Positions 1 to 55,821 of a DNA stretch of 64,000 bases are shown piece after piece (the first letter of the stretch is position 1; every line of letters starts with the position of its first letter). Where the stretch lies: IMG/VR virus record IMGVR_UViG_3300042302_000394, positions 124,001 to 188,000 of that record, one strand, 5' to 3'. The position numbers and the translations under genes were made by a program. The notes beneath the pieces were generated by a model. The model made no database searches, was not told the origin of the DNA, and worked only from the letters and a program-made list of their open reading frames with translations.

Positions 1-153
1 ATTGTCGTAACCTACTCTATAGTGATCACGAAATTGATTTTTTGGAATATTAGGAATAGGAGGGATTGGATTAATTTTATTTTCCATATTTGTATACCCG
101 TGATTTTGGTTCTCGTCTCTAGAGTTTTTAAAATTTTTAAACCAGTCAAACAT
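1..153 (-). CDS. hypothetical protein, partial (runs off window start)
   Basis: ATG at 153, open to position 1 (MFDWFKNFKNSRDE...HYRVGYDN); co-oriented with neighbours; not in ORF track. Confidence 0.5.
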   Translation of the reverse strand, partial: MFDWFKNFKNSRDENQNHGYTNMENKINPIPPIPNIPKNQFRDHYRVGYDN

Positions 154-222
154 ATTAACGTCCTAGATTATCTTGGTCAGCGGCAGGAATGTCAGACCCA
201 GGCGTTGCCAAATTTATCCAAA

Positions 223-504
223 TTAAGATTCTGGATTAACTACAGAAATACCCTGATTTTGGAAATACATGATTAGAAATCGTTTAGCGGCCTGTGCATC
301 AGATTTGCTTAGATTTTGGATAACTGTTTCAACTCTTACCAATTCTCCTGCTCGAATCTTTTGGTAAGTCTTGCTCATAACATCTAGAGATGCTTGTGCC
401 CAAGACTCGTGAATTTCTACTTTGTTTTCGCCCACGTTTTTGCGGGCGTGAATACCGATTGAGCCGTCTCGGTAGTGACGAATTAATACATTATGTTCTT
501 TCAT
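223..504 (-). CDS. hypothetical protein
   Basis: 93-aa ORF with AAGGAG Shine-Dalgarno upstream. Confidence 0.7.
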   Translation of the reverse strand: MKEHNVLIRHYRDGSIGIHARKNVGENKVEIHESWAQASLDVMSKTYQKIRAGELVRVETVIQNLSKSDAQAAKRFLIMYFQNQGISVVNPES

Positions 505-549
505 ACAATTTCTCCTTGTAAAATGCCGTTTCTCACAGCATAAAATTTA

Positions 550-651
550 TTAACGCTTTTTTGCGGCTCGACGAGCCATTTCGTTTACAGTCTTTGGCTT
601 TGGGGGCTTTTTGCCTTTTAAGATTTGACTGACTTTGCGTGGGCTTGGCAT
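550..651 (-). CDS. basic micropeptide c, 33 aa (MPSPRKVSQILKGKKPPKPKTVNEMARRAAKKR)
   Basis: Translated by hand; ATG 3 nt after stop of peptide b; 12/33 K+R. Confidence 0.7.
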   Translation of the reverse strand: MPSPRKVSQILKGKKPPKPKTVNEMARRAAKKR

Positions 652-654
652 AAG

Positions 655-729
655 TTATTTCCTTTTTTTGACAATTCGACGTGCAGTAGCACGTACTGAT
701 CGAGGATGATGTGCTCTAAATTTAGCCAT
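655..729 (-). CDS. basic micropeptide b, 24 aa (MAKFRAHHPRSVRATARRIVKKRK)
   Basis: ATG overlaps TGA of peptide a (TGATG coupling); 10/24 K+R, no acidic residue. Confidence 0.72.
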   Translation of the reverse strand: MAKFRAHHPRSVRATARRIVKKRK

Positions 730-803
730 CATTTTTTCTTTCTAAGTTGGCGGCGAACTGCAACTTTAATTGGACTTGTTGCCCTATCTGATCTACGTGC
801 CAT
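729..803 (-). CDS. basic micropeptide a, 24 aa (MARRSDRATSPIKVAVRRQLRKKK)
   Basis: AAGGAG SD at 810-815, 6 nt before ATG; TAAATA box at 829-834; 10/24 K+R. Confidence 0.75.
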   Translation of the reverse strand: MARRSDRATSPIKVAVRRQLRKKK

Positions 804-827
804 GATTATCTCCTTGTGTTTAGTGTA

Positions 828-1367
828 TTATTTATTGTTCAAGTTGTCAATGTTTAATTTACCCAAACTTTCTAGGTAGATGATTAACTTTTGTTGCTCA
901 TCTGACGACATATCTTGATAAAGATCAATGATAGTGGCTCTGCGTTCTTTATCCGAATTAGTATTTCCTCTATTTTCATTCAGACGCCTGCATCGGATAC
1001 GTAGATTTCCTGGAACATCCTTGCCGCCGAGACTTTTTGGAACAATATGGTCTAGATTAGGAACATGCAGATAATCTGAGGTAATCAAATTTTTGCCCTT
1101 GCCCCAATCGTAATAATATTCATTTACTCCGTCAGTCCATTTTATTGAATTCTCTTTATGATCTTCAATAAATTGATCTGCTTGCTCTCTAGTCCATTTA
1201 TATTCTTTTGCGTAATAACCGTAGACTGCTAGTTTAAAAAGAATAAACGGGTCGTCATGGTTATCACATACATAGTCATAAAGCTCGCCTGTAAAATAGG
1301 TACCTTCTTCACGCCCAGTAAAGAGGGACCTATTAGTTATAGCCTTGTTGATATCAATGTGGTTCAT
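828..1367 (-). CDS. HNH endonuclease-domain protein
   Basis: LDHIVPKSLGG...NLRIRCRRLNENRGN HNH motif. Confidence 0.8.
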   Translation of the reverse strand: MNHIDINKAITNRSLFTGREEGTYFTGELYDYVCDNHDDPFILFKLAVYGYYAKEYKWTREQADQFIEDHKENSIKWTDGVNEYYYDWGKGKNLITSDYLHVPNLDHIVPKSLGGKDVPGNLRIRCRRLNENRGNTNSDKERRATIIDLYQDMSSDEQQKLIIYLESLGKLNIDNLNNK

Positions 1368-2584
1368 GGCTTCTTAGGAATTGCTTTAAATCCTGCAAGT
1401 GCAACTTCAACATCTTGTCCATTGTAATTAATTGGTGCCCAATTAATTGTAGGATGTACAATTTTGCACAATTTACCAATACCGGCCGCAAGATATCTTG
1501 GCTCGGAGCAGTCTAGAAACTTACCGGCTTTAGCATTATTTTCCAAAAACTCACGAAATACTTTTTTAATATCTAAGTGCATGCCACTACGAACTGGATC
1601 TGTGTACTTGTAAGTAATTGCTTCCTGAATGTTCCAATCCAACTCCATTGAATCAGAGATGGGTCCGTTGTTTTCTTGTTCACGCAAGTATTCCATAATT
1701 CCCCACGCATTTGCAGTAGAGAACGGTGCTTTGGCAAATATAGAACATACTATTCCCACCGCACGTTCGTAGATGTCGGCTCCGTAAACATCGTAGTATT
1801 TTAGCATGTTACCCACGCCTGTACATTCTTTTGGTAACACATTATCCGTGCCTTTACCTTTTTCTACAAATCGACTTCCGTATCGAGCATGAATGTCAAA
1901 CACATGTTCACATTTGATATCTTCGGCAATTAAATCAGTTCGACCTTCTGCCTTACGTACTTGATTTCGTCGAACCTTAATTCGAAACTCGTCAAAAGGG
2001 CTAGCAGACAATGTATGCAGATTGTCTGTTGCATACAGGTCAACGTCTACACTTTCAAAATCACTAACTTTCCATTCTACCGGAACTTCACGTACCCCAA
2101 TAATAATACATGCAAGTGTTCGATGTTGACCATTATTAAGATTGTAAGTACCGTCACTGAGCTGCCGAGCCAGTCCCATTAATACATGACTAGGCTCAAA
2201 TTCAAAGAGGATGTCCTGCAATAGATGGCGTAACTGAATGCCGCGCTGAACAGAATTGTTTTTATATGCCTTGGCAGTGTGAATATAATGAGAAGGGTCG
2301 CGGAAAATTCCCCCATTTGACAAGGACATACACCAGTTAAGGTCAATACCATTTAGTGCCTTGGTATTCTTTAGTATTAACAGAATCTTGTTTGCAACCT
2401 GATAAAAGCTAGGACGTGGGCCAAGGTCGTCTGTTTCTACATATTCCGGTACTTTATCTAAAATAGCCTCTTTCTCAGCAGGAGTGAGTTTAGAAATATG
2501 TTTTCGAGCAGTGCGTGGTCCAAAAATTTGAATTAAGTCTTGCCCAAAATTATCTTTAGGGTCAGCATGTTGATTAAAAGCCAT
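1364..2584 (-). CDS. ParB/Srx-like (DGQHR-type) N-terminal domain protein
   Basis: YNLNNGQHRTLACIIIGVREVPV resembles the ParB/Srx DGQHR motif; start moved to ATG 2584 (AAAGGA SD, downstream of promoter). Confidence 0.6.
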   Translation of the reverse strand: MAFNQHADPKDNFGQDLIQIFGPRTARKHISKLTPAEKEAILDKVPEYVETDDLGPRPSFYQVANKILLILKNTKALNGIDLNWCMSLSNGGIFRDPSHYIHTAKAYKNNSVQRGIQLRHLLQDILFEFEPSHVLMGLARQLSDGTYNLNNGQHRTLACIIIGVREVPVEWKVSDFESVDVDLYATDNLHTLSASPFDEFRIKVRRNQVRKAEGRTDLIAEDIKCEHVFDIHARYGSRFVEKGKGTDNVLPKECTGVGNMLKYYDVYGADIYERAVGIVCSIFAKAPFSTANAWGIMEYLREQENNGPISDSMELDWNIQEAITYKYTDPVRSGMHLDIKKVFREFLENNAKAGKFLDCSEPRYLAAGIGKLCKIVHPTINWAPINYNGQDVEVALAGFKAIPKKP

Positions 2585-2611
2585 ATCAAATCCTTTTGTG
2601 TGTAAGTCTTT

Positions 2612-2640
2612 ATTATACAAGAAAAAACCAGTCCTGTCAA
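2612..2640 (-). promoter_or_regulatory. sigma70-type promoter TTGACA-17-TATAAT
   Basis: Perfect consensus upstream of the ParB-like/HNH pair. Confidence 0.8.
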
Positions 2641-2657
2641 GAACTGGTTTATCCAAA

Positions 2658-3188
2658 TTATCTAGGACGGATCTTCATTTTACTGTAGATATTTTGGACA
2701 CCTACTGCTTGTCGGATAGCATCTTGCAGAGCATCGTGTTTCCCACCTTTGGGCATGTCCGGATCAAATCCTAGATCAAACAGAGTGCGAGTGTCGCGTA
2801 ACTGCCAATAATTCCACGGCAACGGCTTACCAAGTTGGCGATAGATGTTTTCGATAATTACTAAGTCAAAGGTAGCACCGTGTGACCAAAATGCATCACA
2901 TCCCCAAGCAAACTTGTGAAACTGGTCCATTGCATCCGCAAGTGGAATTCGATTGTCTGGACTAAAGGCTTCTTCCATAATAACCGGATCTTGTTTACTC
3001 CACCAATCTAGTGTGTTTGGGTCAATTTCTCTACCCAATTTATCTTGGTCGTCGAGGTCAACACGGAAATAAATCTTCTCTCCATATCCGTTGCCCCAGG
3101 GATTAAAGTGTACAGCGCCTAAACTAAGGACAACTGCGTTTGGGGAGACAGCCATAGTCTCCATATCAATCATTAAGTGTTTTGCCAT
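2658..3188 (-). CDS. 3'-5' exoribonuclease (DEDDh, Rv2179c/RNase AS-like)
   Basis: HLMIDMETM, WSHGATFDLVII, RDTRT, HDALQDA motifs; start moved to ATG 3188. Confidence 0.8.
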   Translation of the reverse strand: MAKHLMIDMETMAVSPNAVVLSLGAVHFNPWGNGYGEKIYFRVDLDDQDKLGREIDPNTLDWWSKQDPVIMEEAFSPDNRIPLADAMDQFHKFAWGCDAFWSHGATFDLVIIENIYRQLGKPLPWNYWQLRDTRTLFDLGFDPDMPKGGKHDALQDAIRQAVGVQNIYSKMKIRPR

Positions 3189-3194
3189 ACTGTA

Positions 3195-3223
3195 AGTATA
3201 ACACACTTAATGATCTTTGTCAA
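3195..3223 (-). promoter_or_regulatory. sigma70-type promoter TTGACA-17-TATACT
   Basis: -10 ends 6 nt before ATG 3188, so the transcript is probably leaderless. Confidence 0.65.
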
Positions 3224-3453
3224 TACATTTTTTTAGGTAGTTCGTTATCGCGTAGTTTCTTTTGCCAACGAGATTTAGCTGCGCCTTTTTTTCGCTTTCT
3301 TTCGGTAGTTGGTTTTTCGTAAAACATTTTAGATCGGAGTGTTTCTAGTACTCCACTATCTTCTACCTTTTGTTTGAATTTTCTTAATGCCACATTTAAT
3401 GGCAAGTCGCCAACGATAACTTTATTACCGACTGCTTTATTTTGTTTGCTCAT
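3220..3453 (-). CDS. rpsU: 30S ribosomal protein bS21
   Basis: ALRKFKQKV...GVLETLRSKMFYEKPTTERKRKK signature; start overlaps clpX end. Confidence 0.9.
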   Translation of the reverse strand: MSKQNKAVGNKVIVGDLPLNVALRKFKQKVEDSGVLETLRSKMFYEKPTTERKRKKGAAKSRWQKKLRDNELPKKMY

Positions 3454-4666
3454 TTTTCTTTTTATCAAAAATCATTATGGCAGGTTTGCCATCAATCGTA
3501 TCTTTACTTATGCGAATAGCTGTTAAACCTCGAGCAACTAAGTCAACTGCATCAAATTGATATGGCAGCAATGTTTTTTCGATGATGTTTTTAAGTCCCC
3601 TAGCATTAGTTTTGAGATCTTTGGCTTTACGGGCAATTTCTTTTAGAGCTTGAATTTCAAATTCTAATTTAATACCATCTAACTCAAACATATACTGATA
3701 TTGTTTAACTGGGCTATTTTTAGTTTCAGTAAGGATATTGACTAGTTGATCCTCTGACAATTCGTCTACATTAGTAATAAGCCCAAATCGTCCTACAAAC
3801 TCGGGAATAAGACCGTATTTGATAAGATCTTTTGTACTGATGTCTTGTAGAACACTTGCGTCTTCGTCGATGTTGTCTACATTTGCATGGAATCCGACTG
3901 ACTTTGCACCCTTACGCTGTTTAATGATTTTGTCCAAGCCTACAAATGCTCCACCGCATATAAACAATATACCCCTAGTGTCAATTTCCTGCATATCACT
4001 TCCGGGATGTTTTCGTTTACCAGTCGATGGCACTCGCATAATCGATCCCTCGATCATTTTCAACAAGGCCTGTTGTACACCTTCTCCACTAACATCTCGG
4101 CTAATACTAACATTTTCGCCCTTCTTGGAAATTTTATCAATTTCGTCAATGTAGACAATGCCACGAGCCGCTTTATCAAGATCACCATCTGCTTCGTTGA
4201 TTAATCTTGTTAAAATGCTCTCAACATCATCACCGACATAACCTGCTTCTGTAATACCTGTGGCATCACATATGGCAAAAGGTAATTCTAAATATTGTGC
4301 AATTTTACGTGCCATCATGGTCTTACCGCAGCCCGTGGGTCCTAACAATAACACGTTGGTTTTCTCGAGCTCAATATCTTTACTAGGATTATTGATGCGT
4401 TTGTAATGCTGACTAACTGCAACACTAAGGCTAATTTTAGCATCATCCTGTCCTATAACGTACTCGTCAAGATAGTCTTTGATAGCAACAGGATTTAGAA
4501 GTTTAGAAGGTTCAGCAACTTTTTCTTTTTTGTCTTTTAGTATATCGACACAAAGGTCTACGCACTCGTTACAAATAGCCGCATGTTCACCTACGATCAG
4601 TTTCTCGACATCTTCTTTGCTCTTTCCGCAGAAGTCACAAGAGTGATCACTTTCTGTTTTGTTCAT
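3437..4666 (-). CDS. clpX: ATP-dependent Clp protease ATP-binding subunit ClpX
   Basis: C4 zinc finger, GPTGCGKT Walker A, GYVG pore loop, IVYIDEIDK Walker B, RDVSGEGVQQALLK, RKH loop, VGF (IGF-like) loop. Confidence 0.95.
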   Translation of the reverse strand: MNKTESDHSCDFCGKSKEDVEKLIVGEHAAICNECVDLCVDILKDKKEKVAEPSKLLNPVAIKDYLDEYVIGQDDAKISLSVAVSQHYKRINNPSKDIELEKTNVLLLGPTGCGKTMMARKIAQYLELPFAICDATGITEAGYVGDDVESILTRLINEADGDLDKAARGIVYIDEIDKISKKGENVSISRDVSGEGVQQALLKMIEGSIMRVPSTGKRKHPGSDMQEIDTRGILFICGGAFVGLDKIIKQRKGAKSVGFHANVDNIDEDASVLQDISTKDLIKYGLIPEFVGRFGLITNVDELSEDQLVNILTETKNSPVKQYQYMFELDGIKLEFEIQALKEIARKAKDLKTNARGLKNIIEKTLLPYQFDAVDLVARGLTAIRISKDTIDGKPAIMIFDKKKNEQTK

Positions 4667-7199: not shown

Positions 7200-8204
7200 T
7201 TATTTGATCTGTGTCCAAACACGTTCACGGATCTGCTTTGTCAAGCTGTCAGGCAATGCCACATAGTCTAGGTCGGCAGCATCTTTCTTACCATTCTTGA
7301 ATGCCCAATCAAAGAACTTTAATACTTCGTCACTAGTAGCTTTGTTAGCAGGAGTTTTGTACATGATGATAAAACTTGCTGAACTCACTGGCCATGCATT
7401 GGGATTCTTTTGATCCACGATGCTAAGTCCCATACCTGGAACACTGAACCAATCAGCACCATCTGCTGCGGCAGCAAATGTCAAGTCGTCCGGGCTTACA
7501 TACTTGCCACTCTTGTTTTGTAGTTGCAGGAATGTCATGTTGTTTTTCTTAACATAAGCATACTCTACATAACCAATTGAACCTTTGATTCTGTTCACAT
7601 TGGCAGCAACACCTTCATTGCCCTTGCCACCTACTGAAGTGGCTGCTGGCCACTTGACTGCGGCGCCACGACCCACACGTTGTAGCCACTCAGGGCTTAC
7701 TGTGGCCAAGTAATCGGTCCAGTTGAATGTTGTACCTGAACCATCAGCACGATGAACAATGGTGATGTTCTCGTTAGGTAGGTTCTTGCCTGGATTTAAT
7801 GCAGCCAGTTTAGGGTCATTCCACTTGGTGATGTTGCCCATAAACACTTCAGCCATAACTGGACCAGTGATGCGTAGTTCTCCGGGTTTGAATCCGTCTA
7901 AGTTTACCACAGGAACTGTGCCGCCAATGATAGCAGGAAATTGAACCTGTCCGTTCTTGTCCAAGTTCTCACCGCTTACCGGAGCATCTGTTGCACCAAA
8001 GTCAACGGTCTTTGCATTGATTTGACGAATGCCACCCGAACTTCCGATGCTTTGATAGTTCATGCCTGTACCTGTGGCTTTTTTGTAGCCTTCAGCCCAC
8101 TTGGCATAGATTGGGAATGGGAAGGTAGCTCCGGCACCTGTAATGTCTGCGGCTTGTGCTGACACTGCTACGGCTGCAAATAGAATAGCAAATAATTTTT
8201 TCAC
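7200..8204 (-). CDS. pstS: phosphate ABC transporter substrate-binding protein PstS
   Basis: Signal peptide, GAGATFP, YQSIGSSGG, VDFGATD, HRADGSGTT; start moved to GTG 8204 with AAGGAG SD. Confidence 0.95.
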   Translation of the reverse strand: MKKLFAILFAAVAVSAQAADITGAGATFPFPIYAKWAEGYKKATGTGMNYQSIGSSGGIRQINAKTVDFGATDAPVSGENLDKNGQVQFPAIIGGTVPVVNLDGFKPGELRITGPVMAEVFMGNITKWNDPKLAALNPGKNLPNENITIVHRADGSGTTFNWTDYLATVSPEWLQRVGRGAAVKWPAATSVGGKGNEGVAANVNRIKGSIGYVEYAYVKKNNMTFLQLQNKSGKYVSPDDLTFAAAADGADWFSVPGMGLSIVDQKNPNAWPVSSASFIIMYKTPANKATSDEVLKFFDWAFKNGKKDAADLDYVALPDSLTKQIRERVWTQIK

Positions 8205-8250
8205 TGTAAGTCTCCTTGTGTTTGTGATATTAATATTTAAACACAAAACG

Positions 8251-8286: not shown

Positions 8287-8312
8287 AAAAAGAAACCCGC
8301 CGAAGCGGGTTC
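8287..8312 (-). terminator. intrinsic terminator after tmRNA
   Basis: GAACCCGC-TTCG-GCGGGTTTC followed by T-run. Confidence 0.85.
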
Positions 8313-8731
8313 TGCTATTTTGGGTGACAAGGTATAACTACCTCGTGGAGATCACGCTGCTAGGCGGTCTTCTCCAAAGTATGCATCGTTTGCATTTAGG
8401 TTTTTTGCTTCTGCGACCGGGTCACCCCAATCCTAACGGCTTCTACATTGCCGGACTGTCCATTTCAATACTCTTGACCCAATCGATCCTGTGTCAGGCC
8501 CATTATAAAACATACTCACCCGAATGGACATTGTCACCTCCGCCTACTGTCGGAAATATGTTTTATGGTGGACCTGGCGGGCACTGCCCCCGCGTCTTGA
8601 ATCCTTTTCTGTCTACTTCATACAGTCTTAACTTTTAACAGACTTCCCAGGGTGTGTTTGGCCTCTGCTAAGCCTGCAGGAATCTCACCTACTGCATATC
8701 TGCTACGCAAACTTGCCCCTGCGAAAGTCTA
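8313..8731 (-). ncRNA. ssrA: circularly permuted (two-piece) tmRNA; tag (A)ANDAYFGEDRLAA at 8352-8393
   Basis: T-arm, CAGGUCC-A-CCA end (8593-8566) upstream of 5' GGGCCUG (8501); G3-U70 alanine pair; P2 pairings; tag ORF ending LAA. Confidence 0.92.
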
Positions 8732-8737
8732 TTATTT

Positions 8738-8767
8738 ATTATACAACAGGATTGCCTTGACTGTCAA
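8738..8767 (-). promoter_or_regulatory. sigma70-type promoter TTGACA-18-TATAAT for tmRNA
   Basis: Consensus hexamers immediately upstream of the tmRNA precursor. Confidence 0.75.
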
Positions 8768-9230
8768 GTTCCATCCAAGTATGATCACCCATATATTTTA
8801 CGTGAGCAATATATTCATAATCTTCAGGAGCACTACTTGACCATCCATCCGGTCCCTGAAACACTAACAATGTTTTTGATTTCCTCTTGTCCCAAGTTAA
8901 CCAGTATGATTGTCCTAGCACAGGGCTGAATTGATATTCAGCGGCATGTACTGCGTCAGTTATTTCTAACCGTCGTTTGATCTGCTGGGCTTGTGTTTCA
9001 AGTACAGATACTAACTGCATAATCCGATCATATTCTTGCTGGGCATATATCCTAGCATGGTTGATCATGATATCTTTTTGCTTAGTTACGGGAACTAGGT
9101 CAAATTTGATACCGCCTGCTTCTGTGGGATATTCACTGACGTTTCTATTGAAGAACGGAATTAACGAACCAGTAGATGTAGAATCATAACTGGTTCTTCC
9201 TTTGGCAAGATTTGAACGTTCATCAGCCAA
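8739..9230 (-). CDS. DUF2452-like protein
   Basis: YPTEAGGIKFDLVPV...QEYDRIMQLVSVL...FSPVLGQSYWL pattern, recalled family resemblance. Confidence 0.65.
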   Translation of the reverse strand: MADERSNLAKGRTSYDSTSTGSLIPFFNRNVSEYPTEAGGIKFDLVPVTKQKDIMINHARIYAQQEYDRIMQLVSVLETQAQQIKRRLEITDAVHAAEYQFSPVLGQSYWLTWDKRKSKTLLVFQGPDGWSSSAPEDYEYIAHVKYMGDHTWMELDSQGNPVV

Positions 9231-9370: not shown

Positions 9371-9580
9371 TTAAACTTTCTTAGTTGATCGAATATTTTG
9401 AGCTTGCTTACCTTTGTCACCTTCAGTTAGATCAAATTCTACTTCTTGTCCAACTGCCAGTGTCTTATATCCTTCCATTTGGATTTGACTAAAGTGTGCA
9501 AACACATCATCAGTTGTACCATCTGGAACGATAAATCCAAAACCTTTTGAATTATTAAACCATTTAACTTTTCCCTGCAT
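9371..9580 (-). CDS. cold-shock domain protein
   Basis: GKVKWFN..KGFGFI (RNP1), DVFAHFS (RNP2). Confidence 0.95.
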
Positions 9581-55602: not shown

Positions 55603-55821
55603 TTATTTTGAACGATATACTATACGACATTTAGTTAAGTCGTATGGGCTCATTTCTACCCTAACTCTATCCCCTAACAGTATTTGAATTCTGTTCTGTC
55701 GCATCTTGCCCGAGATGAATCCCAGAACTGCGGAACCTTGTTCCAACCTTACCCGAAACATTGCGTTGGGTAGTACTTCTTCGATCCTGCCCTCAAGGCT
55801 GATCATATCTTCTTTAGCCAC
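55603..55821 (-). CDS. infA: translation initiation factor IF-1
   Basis: [22 protein letters not shown]...[28 protein letters not shown]. Confidence 0.95.

Follow-up and report, generated by a model that had tools for sequence, protein, structure and literature searches.

Three micro-ORFs in an uncultured giant lake phage

We examined a 64-kb window of DNA (positions 124,001 to 188,000 of IMG/VR record IMGVR_UViG_3300042302_000394) from an uncultured giant lake phage, in which three short, consecutive ORFs on the minus strand encode strongly positively charged peptides of 24, 24 and 33 residues, here termed pep1, pep2 and pep3. An initial annotation, made from sequence alone, had described them as coupled micro-ORFs rich in Arg and Lys with a common RRxx(K/R)3-type C-terminus, preceded by an AAGGAG Shine-Dalgarno (SD) site and a TAAATA late-type box. 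Reanalysis confirmed this observation, with all three ORFs present exactly as described. The features relevant to the locus are as follows:

822..850, minus strand: sigma-70-like promoter, TTGACA-17-TACACT, with an ATAAATA box (835..829) in the spacer
810..815, minus strand: AAGGAG SD site, 6 nt before the pep1 ATG
729..803, minus strand: pep1, 24 aa, family C, with a C-terminal AAVRRQLRK(K/R)K motif
655..729, minus strand: pep2, 24 aa (25 aa from the ATG at 732), family B, MAKF(R/K)AHHxRS..ATARR..KK(R/K)K; its ATG overlaps the pep1 stop codon (TGATG)
659..664, minus strand: AAGGAA SD site for pep3, formed by the last Lys/Arg codons of pep2
550..651, minus strand: pep3, 33 aa, family A, MPSPRRVSQILKGKKPPKPK..AMAKR..K(K/R)K; its ATG lies 3 nt after the pep2 TAA
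223..504, minus strand: ORF of 93 aa without a family match, with its own AAGGAG (517..512), probably co-transcribed downstream of the cassette
498..792, strand not resolved: the only stretch of window positions 1-3300 recovered in a lake-water metatranscriptome
828..2656, minus strand: conserved upstream gene pair, ParB-like (2656..1364) and HNH-like (1367..828)
8352..8644, minus strand: permuted (two-piece) tmRNA gene, 7.5 kb upstream on the same strand

The promoter, inferred from sequence alone, matches 10 of 12 consensus positions, and no terminator-like site was detected between pep3 and the 93-aa ORF. To assess whether such a cluster might arise by chance, we compared all 586 ATG-initiated ORFs of 15-45 aa in the window. 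The cluster is not a chance occurrence: only eight distinct ORFs had a K+R fraction of at least 0.33, of which three form this contiguous run, while the others lie inside larger genes. The window also holds the genes that the initial annotation had cited as context, namely bS21 (3453..3220), IF-1 (55821..55603) and the permuted tmRNA, in addition to CspA and ClpX. ARAGORN did not detect the tmRNA, which was identified using the Rfam model RF04321 (8352..8627; 101.9 bits against a gathering score of 47).

The metatranscriptome signal consisted of two 151-nt contigs with 100% identity covering 498-648 and 642-792 and nothing on the flanking genes; with a depth of 2, no strand information and possible DNA carry-over, these data indicate presence only.

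Conservation and selection

We next asked whether the frames persist in relatives, as their absence had been named beforehand as the outcome that would disprove the annotation. All three frames are conserved in many relatives with mostly synonymous change. Each peptide belongs to a family found in dozens of uncultured viral contigs, with dN/dS values of 0.06-0.16 at saturated synonymous sites. For pep3, 42 viral loci with 29 distinct nucleotide versions gave a dN/dS of 0.06 at a dS of 1.3 and codon-position entropies of 0.34, 0.22 and 1.15; pep3 was also called as a gene in Logan contigs. For pep2, 67 viral loci were identified, with a dN/dS of 0.12 at a dS of 1.4; relatives start at MAKF, which favors the ATG at 729. 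Orthologues of pep1 showed 57-76% identity in the alignment used, a dN/dS of 0.11-0.16 and a third-position entropy about three times that of positions 1-2. The sister families D, E and B' gave values of 0.07-0.11. Across these families, dS was about 0.3-2.7 and third-position entropy 1.5-4 times that of positions 1-2. We are, therefore, highly confident that these are genuine protein-coding genes. The alternative of chance ORFs in a noncoding or RNA-coding spacer, suggested by their size below usual gene-calling cutoffs and by the absence of the exact sequences from the protein collection, is refuted by the codon-position pattern and further contradicted by conservation in 40-70 loci for each of the three families, by the SD sites and coupling, and by the lack of an Rfam hit in the region.

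Conservation was sequence specific and not confined to charge. Of 16 invariant columns in pep3, 12 are nonbasic, while K/R interchange is common elsewhere; in pep2, F4, H7, H8, S11 and T15 are invariant. The peptides contain 36-48% K+R (36-42% in pep1-3, with K and R about equal) and no hydrophobic segment. Profile comparison suggested that the shared C-terminal motif is probably a homologous module of about 15-17 residues (pep3 18-33 against pep2 8-24, probability 66%; pep1 against pep2, 56%). AlphaFold2 predicted for pep3 a helix at residues 4-11, an extended segment at 12-21 and a second helix at 22-32 (pLDDT 89).

Cassette architecture and genomic neighborhood

The micro-genes form shuffled cassettes of one to four cistrons drawn from at least five related families, which we found only in uncultured, mostly freshwater, T4-like large phages (contigs of 208 kb and up to 376 kb). 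In a relative with 88% identity, pep2 and pep3 are retained in swapped order, pep1 is replaced by two other family members and the 93-aa ORF keeps its position. The ParB-like and HNH-like genes are adjacent in all 15 relatives with 38-70% identity and represent a syntenic anchor after which gene content varies (groES/groEL, an epimerase, rIIA/rIIB and others); in relatives at or below 70% identity of the ParB-like protein, synteny ends after the HNH-like gene and no peptides were present, so that these could not be used for dN/dS analysis.

In total, we compared 73 distinct contexts, with the caveat that these are phylogenetically related and the counts, thus, not independent. Family B was the most widespread, occurring in 49. 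The compound promoter architecture recurred, with the sigma-70-like motif in 16/73 upstream regions against 2.3% background and ATAAATA in 17/73 against 1.9%, usually 15 nt after the start of the −35 element; a late-promoter role of this box, as proposed by the initial annotation, remains putative. An SD-like motif lies within 18 nt of the first ATG in 52/73 cassettes, and the K-R-K codons (AAG AGG AAA) that provide the next SD site recur at cistron ends.

In 22 of the 73 contexts, a permuted tmRNA gene lies within 1 kb downstream, and it is the first downstream feature in 12. In 11 measured loci, the gap between the last stop codon and the start of the tmRNA model is 4-30 nt (median 7), leaving no room for a separate promoter. 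Genes upstream vary while the tmRNA stays. These downstream tmRNAs scored 75-144 bits and passed the gathering scores of RF04321, RF01850 or RF01849. Loci retrieved through the tmRNA alone included two with a single C-type or D-type micro-ORF in the same position, and one metagenome locus showed the same arrangement. However, phage tmRNAs do not generally carry such cassettes, which occurred in only about 2 of 45 phage permuted tmRNA loci. In 51 of 73 contexts, including the window, no tmRNA lies within 1 kb downstream, and the adjacency may, therefore, be a lineage trait. Other recurring neighbors are iscU, commoner than tmRNA as the first downstream neighbor (16/73), cspA (adjacent in 13 contexts), tRNAs, including a tRNA-Ser gene that starts 1 nt after the pep3 stop in one locus, and, upstream in 11/73, a gene for a 64-aa protein made only of the Hc1 histone-H1-like N-terminal domain without the usual basic tail.

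The cassettes are always located at the 5′ end of a unit, with 0-30-nt junctions to the next feature. Together with the SD sites created by terminal Lys/Arg codons and the varying downstream partners, this might suggest cis-acting leader cistrons, for which the act of translation rather than the peptide matters, stabilizing, processing or coupling expression of the tmRNA precursor, iscU or the 93-aa ORF. We consider this very unlikely, since purifying selection acts at the amino-acid level while synonymous sites vary freely, the families keep their sequence whatever lies downstream, and several cassettes (at loci L056, L062, L064 and L065) are stand-alone units ending in a strong intrinsic terminator.

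Searches for related proteins

No match was found in Pfam, NCBIfam, PHROG, PDB, cellular genomes, deposited phages or the literature. Pfam-A and NCBIfam searches returned no hit even at E ≤ 10 for pep1-3 or for representatives of families D, E and B'. Searching window positions 1-3500 at the DNA level, and pep3, pep2 and the ParB-like protein by tblastn, against deposited phages (50,697 genomes) yielded no match, indicating an uncultured lineage. No pep3 relative was detected in 185,579 cellular species representatives, and the ESM Atlas returned only unnamed, uninformative clusters (score ≤ 0.87). Profile searches of PDB chains gave nothing for pep3 and pep1, a chance WD40 motif and a nonsignificant Dap1b N-terminal match for pep2, and only designed repeat proteins for family D.

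For family E, the only PDB hit was ribosomal protein bL35 (RpmI), at an E value of 2.5 and aligned residue 1 to residue 1 (MPKIKSVR..A.R...T against MPKIKTVR.AAKRFKKT). We compared hhalign scores against a bL35 alignment with 150 composition-preserving column shuffles each; the observed scores were 20.5 for E (reached by no shuffle), 16.3 for pep3 residues 17-31 (reached by one) and 14.2 for D (reached by two), although this similarity is short (15-19 residues), was noticed before it was tested and is not significant in database-wide searches, of which two further ones did not recover it. The shared module of pep3 and D aligns to bL35 residues 2-20. Tested directly, pep2 and pep1 did not exceed the null. 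A search for more E-family members added only one sequence. A possible bL34 relationship of pep2, considered because of its FRA...ARR..K.R pattern, was rejected, as no family exceeded the shuffle null against bL34. A ClpX C-motif-2 degron (RRKKAI type) was considered and dropped, since the peptides end in basic residues rather than in the hydrophobic end of that motif.

Possible functions

The initial annotation had proposed either protamine-like DNA-condensing core peptides or mimics of tiny basic ribosomal proteins (bS22/bTHX/eL41 class), the latter fitting a phage with bS21, IF-1 and tmRNA. This interpretation is supported in part: conservation and selection uphold three coupled, translated genes for basic peptides with a common C-terminus, whereas membership of bS22, bTHX or eL41 is not supported, with no hit in Pfam-A, NCBIfam or PDB chains, and neither function is demonstrated.

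A ribosome-directed or RNA-directed role fits better, on the basis of the frequent tmRNA, tRNA and cspA neighbors, of conservation that falls mainly on nonbasic residues and, within the limits given above, of the bL35-N-terminus-like module in pep3 and families D and E. What the analysis establishes is that the genes are coding and under strong purifying selection, share a basic C-terminal module, usually have their own strong promoter-like and SD signals, and in about a third of contexts sit just upstream of the permuted tmRNA gene. The remainder of our preferred reading is inference, in the absence of binding, localization or translation data, and is offered tentatively. In this view, the three co-transcribed genes would be expressed in large amounts from a host-type promoter, with the peptides coming from the same precursor transcript where a tmRNA follows. 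They would bind a specific structured RNA target in the host translation apparatus, most likely rRNA and possibly the tmRNA-ribosome-rescue complex, through a short amphipathic basic helix resembling the rRNA-binding N-terminal arm of bL35, and thereby tune or protect translation for a phage that also brings its own bS21, IF-1, CspA, tmRNA and ClpX.

A DNA-condensing or charge-neutralizing role remains possible but unlikely. Such peptides, similar to protamines, adenovirus Mu or histone H1 tails, would be packaged with or coat the 200-380-kb genome or compact the host nucleoid. High K+R content without hydrophobic segments, several cistrons behind strong signals, the recurring T4-late-like ATAAATA box, the Hc1-like neighbor and the very large genome would agree with this idea. 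On the other hand, protamine-like condensers conserve composition rather than sequence, while these families show sequence-specific constraint; moreover, the genes lie among tmRNA, tRNA, cspA, iscU and bS21-type auxiliary genes rather than in the head-morphogenesis module, and the main promoter element is of the sigma-70 type.

Two further alternatives appear unlikely. As ribosome-rescue accessories, the basic tails would insert into the empty mRNA channel of stalled ribosomes, as do those of ArfA, ArfT, ArfB and SmpB, and assist, replace or block host rescue alongside the phage tmRNA. This would agree with co-location and probable co-transcription with the tmRNA, with the phage ClpX and with a size range matching ArfT (40 aa) and mature ArfA (52-55 aa), whose channel-binding motifs KGKGS and KKGGSTNKK (PMC6299226) resemble the invariant KGKK of pep3. 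However, only pep3 has the KGK motif, no release-factor-binding part is evident, and most cassettes, including this one, are not next to a tmRNA. Alternatively, the peptides might be inhibitors or decoys of a host protein or defense system, for example, a nuclease, a protease adaptor or a nucleic-acid sensor. The accessory region after a conserved anchor and the rapid turnover of cassette content between close relatives are typical of counter-defense loci, and many characterized small phage proteins act on host proteins (PMC11323111). Against this, the sequences are very strongly conserved across deep divergence (dS > 1), unlike arms-race genes, no partner is identifiable, and the extreme positive charge points to a nucleic-acid target.

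A more far-reaching version of the ribosome-directed reading, which we regard as unlikely although not excluded, is that a lineage of large freshwater phages carries mobile cassettes of 21-38-residue ‘mini ribosomal-protein arms’, at least some of which would descend from or mimic the rRNA-binding N-terminus of bL35. Transcribed as the 5′ leader of the two-piece tmRNA precursor, they would dock on host ribosomes or the tmRNA-ribosome complex and reprogram or protect translation during infection. In that case, they would be the smallest virus-encoded ribosome ligands known and the first protein-coding leader described for a tmRNA gene.

These genes, although absent from every family library searched, are among the most strongly conserved sequences in this phage group and occur in over a hundred viral contigs, which shows that micro-ORFs in phage ‘intergenic’ regions deserve systematic annotation. 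If they bind ribosomes or tmRNA, they would add a new and very small class to the phage toolkit for taking over translation, beside bS21, IF-1 and tmRNA, and would be short enough to synthesize as probes or inhibitors of bacterial ribosomes. If they condense DNA instead, they would be the first protamine-like system of tailed phages.

Comparison with known systems

Like bL35, the phage peptides are very basic and Ala-rich, but at 21-38 aa against about 65 aa they lack the rest of the bL35 domain. They gave no hit to Pfam PF01632, and no full rpmI gene occurs in the 275 loci retrieved; the resemblance may reflect homology or convergence. Very small basic ribosomal proteins (bS22, bTHX, bL36, bL34 and eL41; 20-46 aa) are similar in size and charge, and bS21 and IF-1 in the phage context are shared with other large phages carrying translation genes (PMC7162821, PMC9723584). 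No sequence match to any of these proteins was found in Pfam or NCBIfam, and variable multicopy cassettes are not known for ribosomal protein genes.

ArfA, ArfT and SmpB C-terminal tails are also short, Lys/Arg-rich and of the KGK type, with a functional link to tmRNA that is here physical. No homology was detectable (no Pfam hit to ArfA, PF03889, at E ≤ 10 and no PDB hit to ArfA, ArfB or SmpB), and several paralogous peptides occur rather than one factor. Protamine-like viral condensers (adenovirus Mu/VII, baculovirus P6.9) and chlamydial Hc1 are short polycations as well, but in the phage peptides K and R are mixed rather than Arg-dominated, the sequence is strictly conserved also at nonbasic positions, and no Pfam match was found.

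A two-piece tmRNA behind an early promoter is already described for phage Melnitz (PMC9004378). In the phages studied here with an adjacent tmRNA, protein-coding micro-cistrons lie between the promoter and the acceptor piece, an arrangement not described in that paper and lacking in about 43 of 45 other phage permuted tmRNA loci. Whichever function applies, this promoter-microcistron-tmRNA order is a new gene organization for tmRNA. In the window phage, where the tmRNA is distant from the cassette, its gene is preceded by a TTGACA-18-TATAAT promoter followed by AAATAAT, and its tag was read as ANDAYFGEDRLAA.

Organization of the microcistron cassette

We first examined the left end of the window, where all genes run on the minus strand and a conserved gene pair precedes the micro-ORFs. 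In order of transcription, the features are as follows.
2656..1364 (minus strand), ParB-like gene (430 aa)
1367..828 (minus strand), HNH-like gene (179 aa)
850..822 (minus strand), sigma-70-like promoter, TTGACA-17-TACACT, with an ATAAATA box in the spacer
815..810 (minus strand), AAGGAG Shine-Dalgarno site
803..729 (minus strand), pep1, 24 aa
729..655 (minus strand), pep2, 24 aa (25 aa from the ATG at 732)
651..550 (minus strand), pep3, 33 aa
504..223 (minus strand), ORF of 93 aa with its own AAGGAG

The pep2 start overlaps the pep1 stop (TGATG), while pep3 starts 3 nt after the pep2 stop and uses an AAGGAA Shine-Dalgarno site formed by the last Lys/Arg codons of pep2. No terminator-like site was detected between pep3 and the 93-aa ORF. 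The run is not a product of chance; among 586 ATG-initiated ORFs of 15-45 aa in the window, only eight distinct ORFs have a K+R fraction of at least 0.33, of which three form this run and the others lie inside larger genes. The observation of three consecutive basic micro-ORFs made in the initial annotation is, therefore, confirmed. The HNH endonuclease is not a mobile homing gene here. It is adjacent to the ParB-like gene in all 15 relatives at 38-70% identity and in the closer relatives whose contigs reach that far, so that the two form a conserved gene pair. The listed TTG start of the ParB-like ORF is probably about 24 codons too early, since homologues align from M25.

Genome context

The window belongs to an uncultured large phage. 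Identical copies lie on IMG/VR contigs of up to 208 kb, and the longest contig carrying the neighboring gene is 376 kb. Searches of deposited phage genomes returned no match at the DNA level, nor at the protein level for the ParB-like anchor gene and the peptides. A structural protein resembles those of T4-like cyanophages, and a close relative (locus L026) carries rIIB and ClpP. The initial annotation was correct in stating that this phage carries bS21, IF-1 and tmRNA. Together with CspA and ClpX, these form a sizeable translation and proteostasis gene set.
8644..8352 (minus strand), permuted two-piece tmRNA (Rfam RF04321, 101.9 bits)
3453..3220 (minus strand), bS21 (PF01165, E 4e-14)
55821..55603 (minus strand), IF-1 (PF01176, E 4e-25), with an apparent GTG start and the N terminus MAKED...
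9580..9371 (minus strand), CspA
4666..3437 (minus strand), ClpX

The tmRNA gene was missed by ARAGORN but found with Rfam. Its tag reads ANDAYFGEDRLAA, its putative promoter is TTGACA-18-TATAAT followed by AAATAAT and a hairpin plus T-run terminator lies at about 8320..8290. It is located between a DUF2452-like gene (9230..8739) and pstS (8246..7200).

Conservation and selection

To assess whether the micro-ORFs are genes, we compared the locus with its relatives. Relatives at 38-70% identity of the ParB-like protein retain the ParB-like/HNH-like pair, but gene content diverges immediately afterwards and the peptides are absent, placing the cassette in a variable region. A relative with 88% identity contains four micro-ORFs between the HNH-like gene and the 93-aa gene, comprising orthologues of pep3 and pep2 in swapped order and two different basic peptides in place of pep1. 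Pattern searches then identified pep3 in 42 viral loci, pep2 in 67 and pep1 in at least seven more. The first 29 codons of pep3 exist in 29 distinct nucleotide versions, with entropies by codon position of 0.34/0.22/1.15 and a dN/dS of 0.06 at a dS of about 1.3; the other families give dN/dS values of 0.07-0.16. A lack of conserved frames in relatives, set in advance as grounds for dismissing the ORFs, was clearly not what we observed, and these are protein-coding genes under strong purifying selection. The only disrupted copy seen was a pep3 frameshifted in a poly-A run (locus L065:3001-3081), which is either a sequencing error or a pseudogene. Weak support for expression comes from a lake-water metatranscriptome, in which the only part of window 1-3300 recovered is 498-792, that is, the cassette, although at a depth of 2 these data show presence only.

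Family structure

Across 73 distinct sequence contexts, the cassettes hold one, two, three or four cistrons (29, 30, 8 and 6 cases, respectively), drawn from the families listed below. A few peptides fit no family, and order and content vary even between close relatives.

Microcistron families across the 73 sequence contexts
Family A; window member pep3; 32 contexts
Family B; window member pep2; 49 contexts
Family B'; no window member; 5 contexts
Family C; window member pep1; 25 contexts (the regular expression used missed the window's own pep1 variant, which was counted as 'other')
Family D; no window member; 13 contexts
Family E; no window member; 3 contexts

Profile comparison aligned pep3 residues 18-33 with pep2 residues 8-24 (probability 66%) and pep1 with pep2 (56%). 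The common C terminus pointed out in the initial annotation is, therefore, probably a homologous module of the form P-(K/R)-(S/T)-(V/I)-x-A-x-A-(K/R)-R-x-x-(K/R)-K-(K/R)-K. A distant branch of the pep3 family (MGIRKISWRLKGK...) occurs as a tandem duplicate in a different phage context, with no tmRNA in the 6.5-kb locus (L079:3887-4105). Conservation is not merely compositional; 12 of the 16 invariant pep3 columns are non-basic, and pep2 has invariant F4, H7, H8, S11 and T15. This pattern weakens the DNA-condensing, protamine-like reading that the initial annotation had proposed as one of two options. For pep3, AlphaFold2 predicts two short helices joined by the extended KGKKPPKPK segment (pLDDT 89).

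No match was found in Pfam, NCBIfam or PHROGs, in 185,579 cellular species genomes, in a profile search of 1.8 billion proteins beyond the family itself or in full-text literature. Searches of PDB sequences yielded only weak hits, including bL35 for a family E peptide, as described below, and, for residues 5-22 of the pep2 family alignment, a non-significant similarity (E 0.2) to the N-terminal KAGHPPAVKAGGKRVVKK motif of Dap1b, a chain in the ribosome-complex entries 7oya and 7oyd. The families are new and unannotated.

Genomic associations

The strongest lead came from the sequence just downstream of many cassettes, which proved to be the acceptor piece of a permuted tmRNA. A tmRNA lies within 1 kb downstream in 22 of 73 contexts (21 of the 60 with at least 500 nt of downstream sequence) and is the first downstream feature in 12. 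In 11 loci, the gap from the last stop codon to position 1 of the RF04321 model is 4-30 nt (median 7). As a separate promoter does not fit into this space, we infer that the tmRNA precursor is transcribed from the cassette promoter. The genes upstream of these cassettes differ while the tmRNA stays. Loci found through the tmRNA motif alone include two with a single C- or D-type micro-ORF at the same place, and a metagenome locus adds another. However, only about 2 of 45 phage permuted tmRNAs have a cassette, the contexts are related to each other so that the counts are not independent, and in this window the tmRNA lies 7.5 kb away. The promoter-microcistron-tmRNA arrangement appears to be undescribed. 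A rescue-factor-like role in the empty mRNA channel would explain the tmRNA link and the KGKK motif of pep3, given the motifs of ArfA and ArfT (PMC6299226), but it has no homology support and we consider it unlikely.

Variations on this arrangement were also seen. In one metagenome contig, a 22-codon hydrophobic micro-ORF, a putative membrane peptide, lies between the basic cassette and the tmRNA acceptor piece (L277:1354-1430 approx.). At two loci (L071:4753-4828 and L206), ARAGORN called a tRNA with a CUA anticodon, labeled Pyl, about 1.1 kb downstream of the cassette and its adjoining tmRNA, a possible amber-suppressor tRNA in these phages. A 2OG-Fe(II) oxygenase (PF13759) is the gene directly upstream of two tmRNA-linked cassettes (L044:2142-2807 and L051), although any modification of the Lys-, Arg- and Pro-rich peptides by this enzyme would be speculative.

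Where no tmRNA follows, the cassette ends in a strong intrinsic terminator or runs into another gene. Stand-alone cassettes, together with selection at the amino acid level, conflict with a purely cis-acting leader function, which we regard as very unlikely. Other neighbors also recur, comprising iscU-iscA downstream (16 contexts), cspA (13) and, upstream, a 64-aa protein made only of the Hc1 (chlamydial histone-H1-like) N-terminal domain without a basic tail (11, including L061:2769-2963). This protein sits directly upstream of basic micro-ORFs, which are followed by iscU-iscA, and the micropeptides might supply the missing basic tail in trans.

Similarity to the bL35 N terminus

Family E peptides begin with MPKIKSVR, a sequence reminiscent of the N terminus of bL35, which we took only as a lead. 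bL35 was the only PDB hit of an E peptide, aligned residue 1 to residue 1 but at E 2.5, and the E-family profile did not recover it. We then compared the families by hhalign with an alignment of real bL35 proteins, using 150 composition-preserving column shuffles as the null. Scores exceeded the null for three families, with E at 20.5 (0 shuffles reaching it), pep3 residues 17-31 at 16.3 (1 shuffle) and D at 14.2 (2 shuffles), whereas pep2 and pep1 did not exceed it. The identical test against bL34 was negative for every family, and the signal is, therefore, not just basic composition. No full rpmI gene occurs in the 275 fetched loci. Because the similarity is short and the hypothesis was formed before the test, we treat these results as moderate support that the shared module is an rRNA-binding arm by descent or by mimicry, and not as family membership.

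Proposed function

The analysis establishes that the genes are coding, conserved, modular and coupled, that they carry strong expression signals at the sequence level and that they are often physically joined to the phage tmRNA gene. That they are expressed at a high level, and together with the tmRNA where it follows, and that they bind a specific structured nucleic acid target is our inference from these data. The translation apparatus would be the most likely target because of the neighborhood, the other translation genes of the phage and the bL35-like module, an assignment that we make only tentatively. The interpretation offered in the initial annotation, that of ribosome-binding mimics or protamine-like condensers, is partly supported, with the ribosome- or RNA-directed option favored over the protamine option. 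The DNA-condensing alternative, although less likely, is kept alive by the Hc1-like neighbor, the late-type box and the genome size, whereas the pattern of conservation and the gene location weaken it. A protein-directed or counter-defense role is unlikely but cannot be excluded.

Promoter and transcript elements

The strict sigma-70-like motif occurs upstream of 16 of 73 cassettes (background 2.3%) and ATAAATA upstream of 17 of 73 (background 1.9%), the latter usually 15 nt after the start of the -35 element. The promoter of the window's tmRNA has the same TATAAT-AAATAAT arrangement. The sequence singled out in the initial annotation as a late-type box is, therefore, a recurring element, with any role as a late promoter remaining putative. 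The terminal K/R codons double as the Shine-Dalgarno site of the next cistron, which may add a nucleotide-level constraint on the C termini. Lastly, a short stem-loop without a T-run lies between the last micro-ORF and the 93-aa gene (window 520..545, minus strand, and locus L027:2770-2800); its position is conserved in the 88% relative but its sequence is not, suggesting that it may be a processing or stability element.
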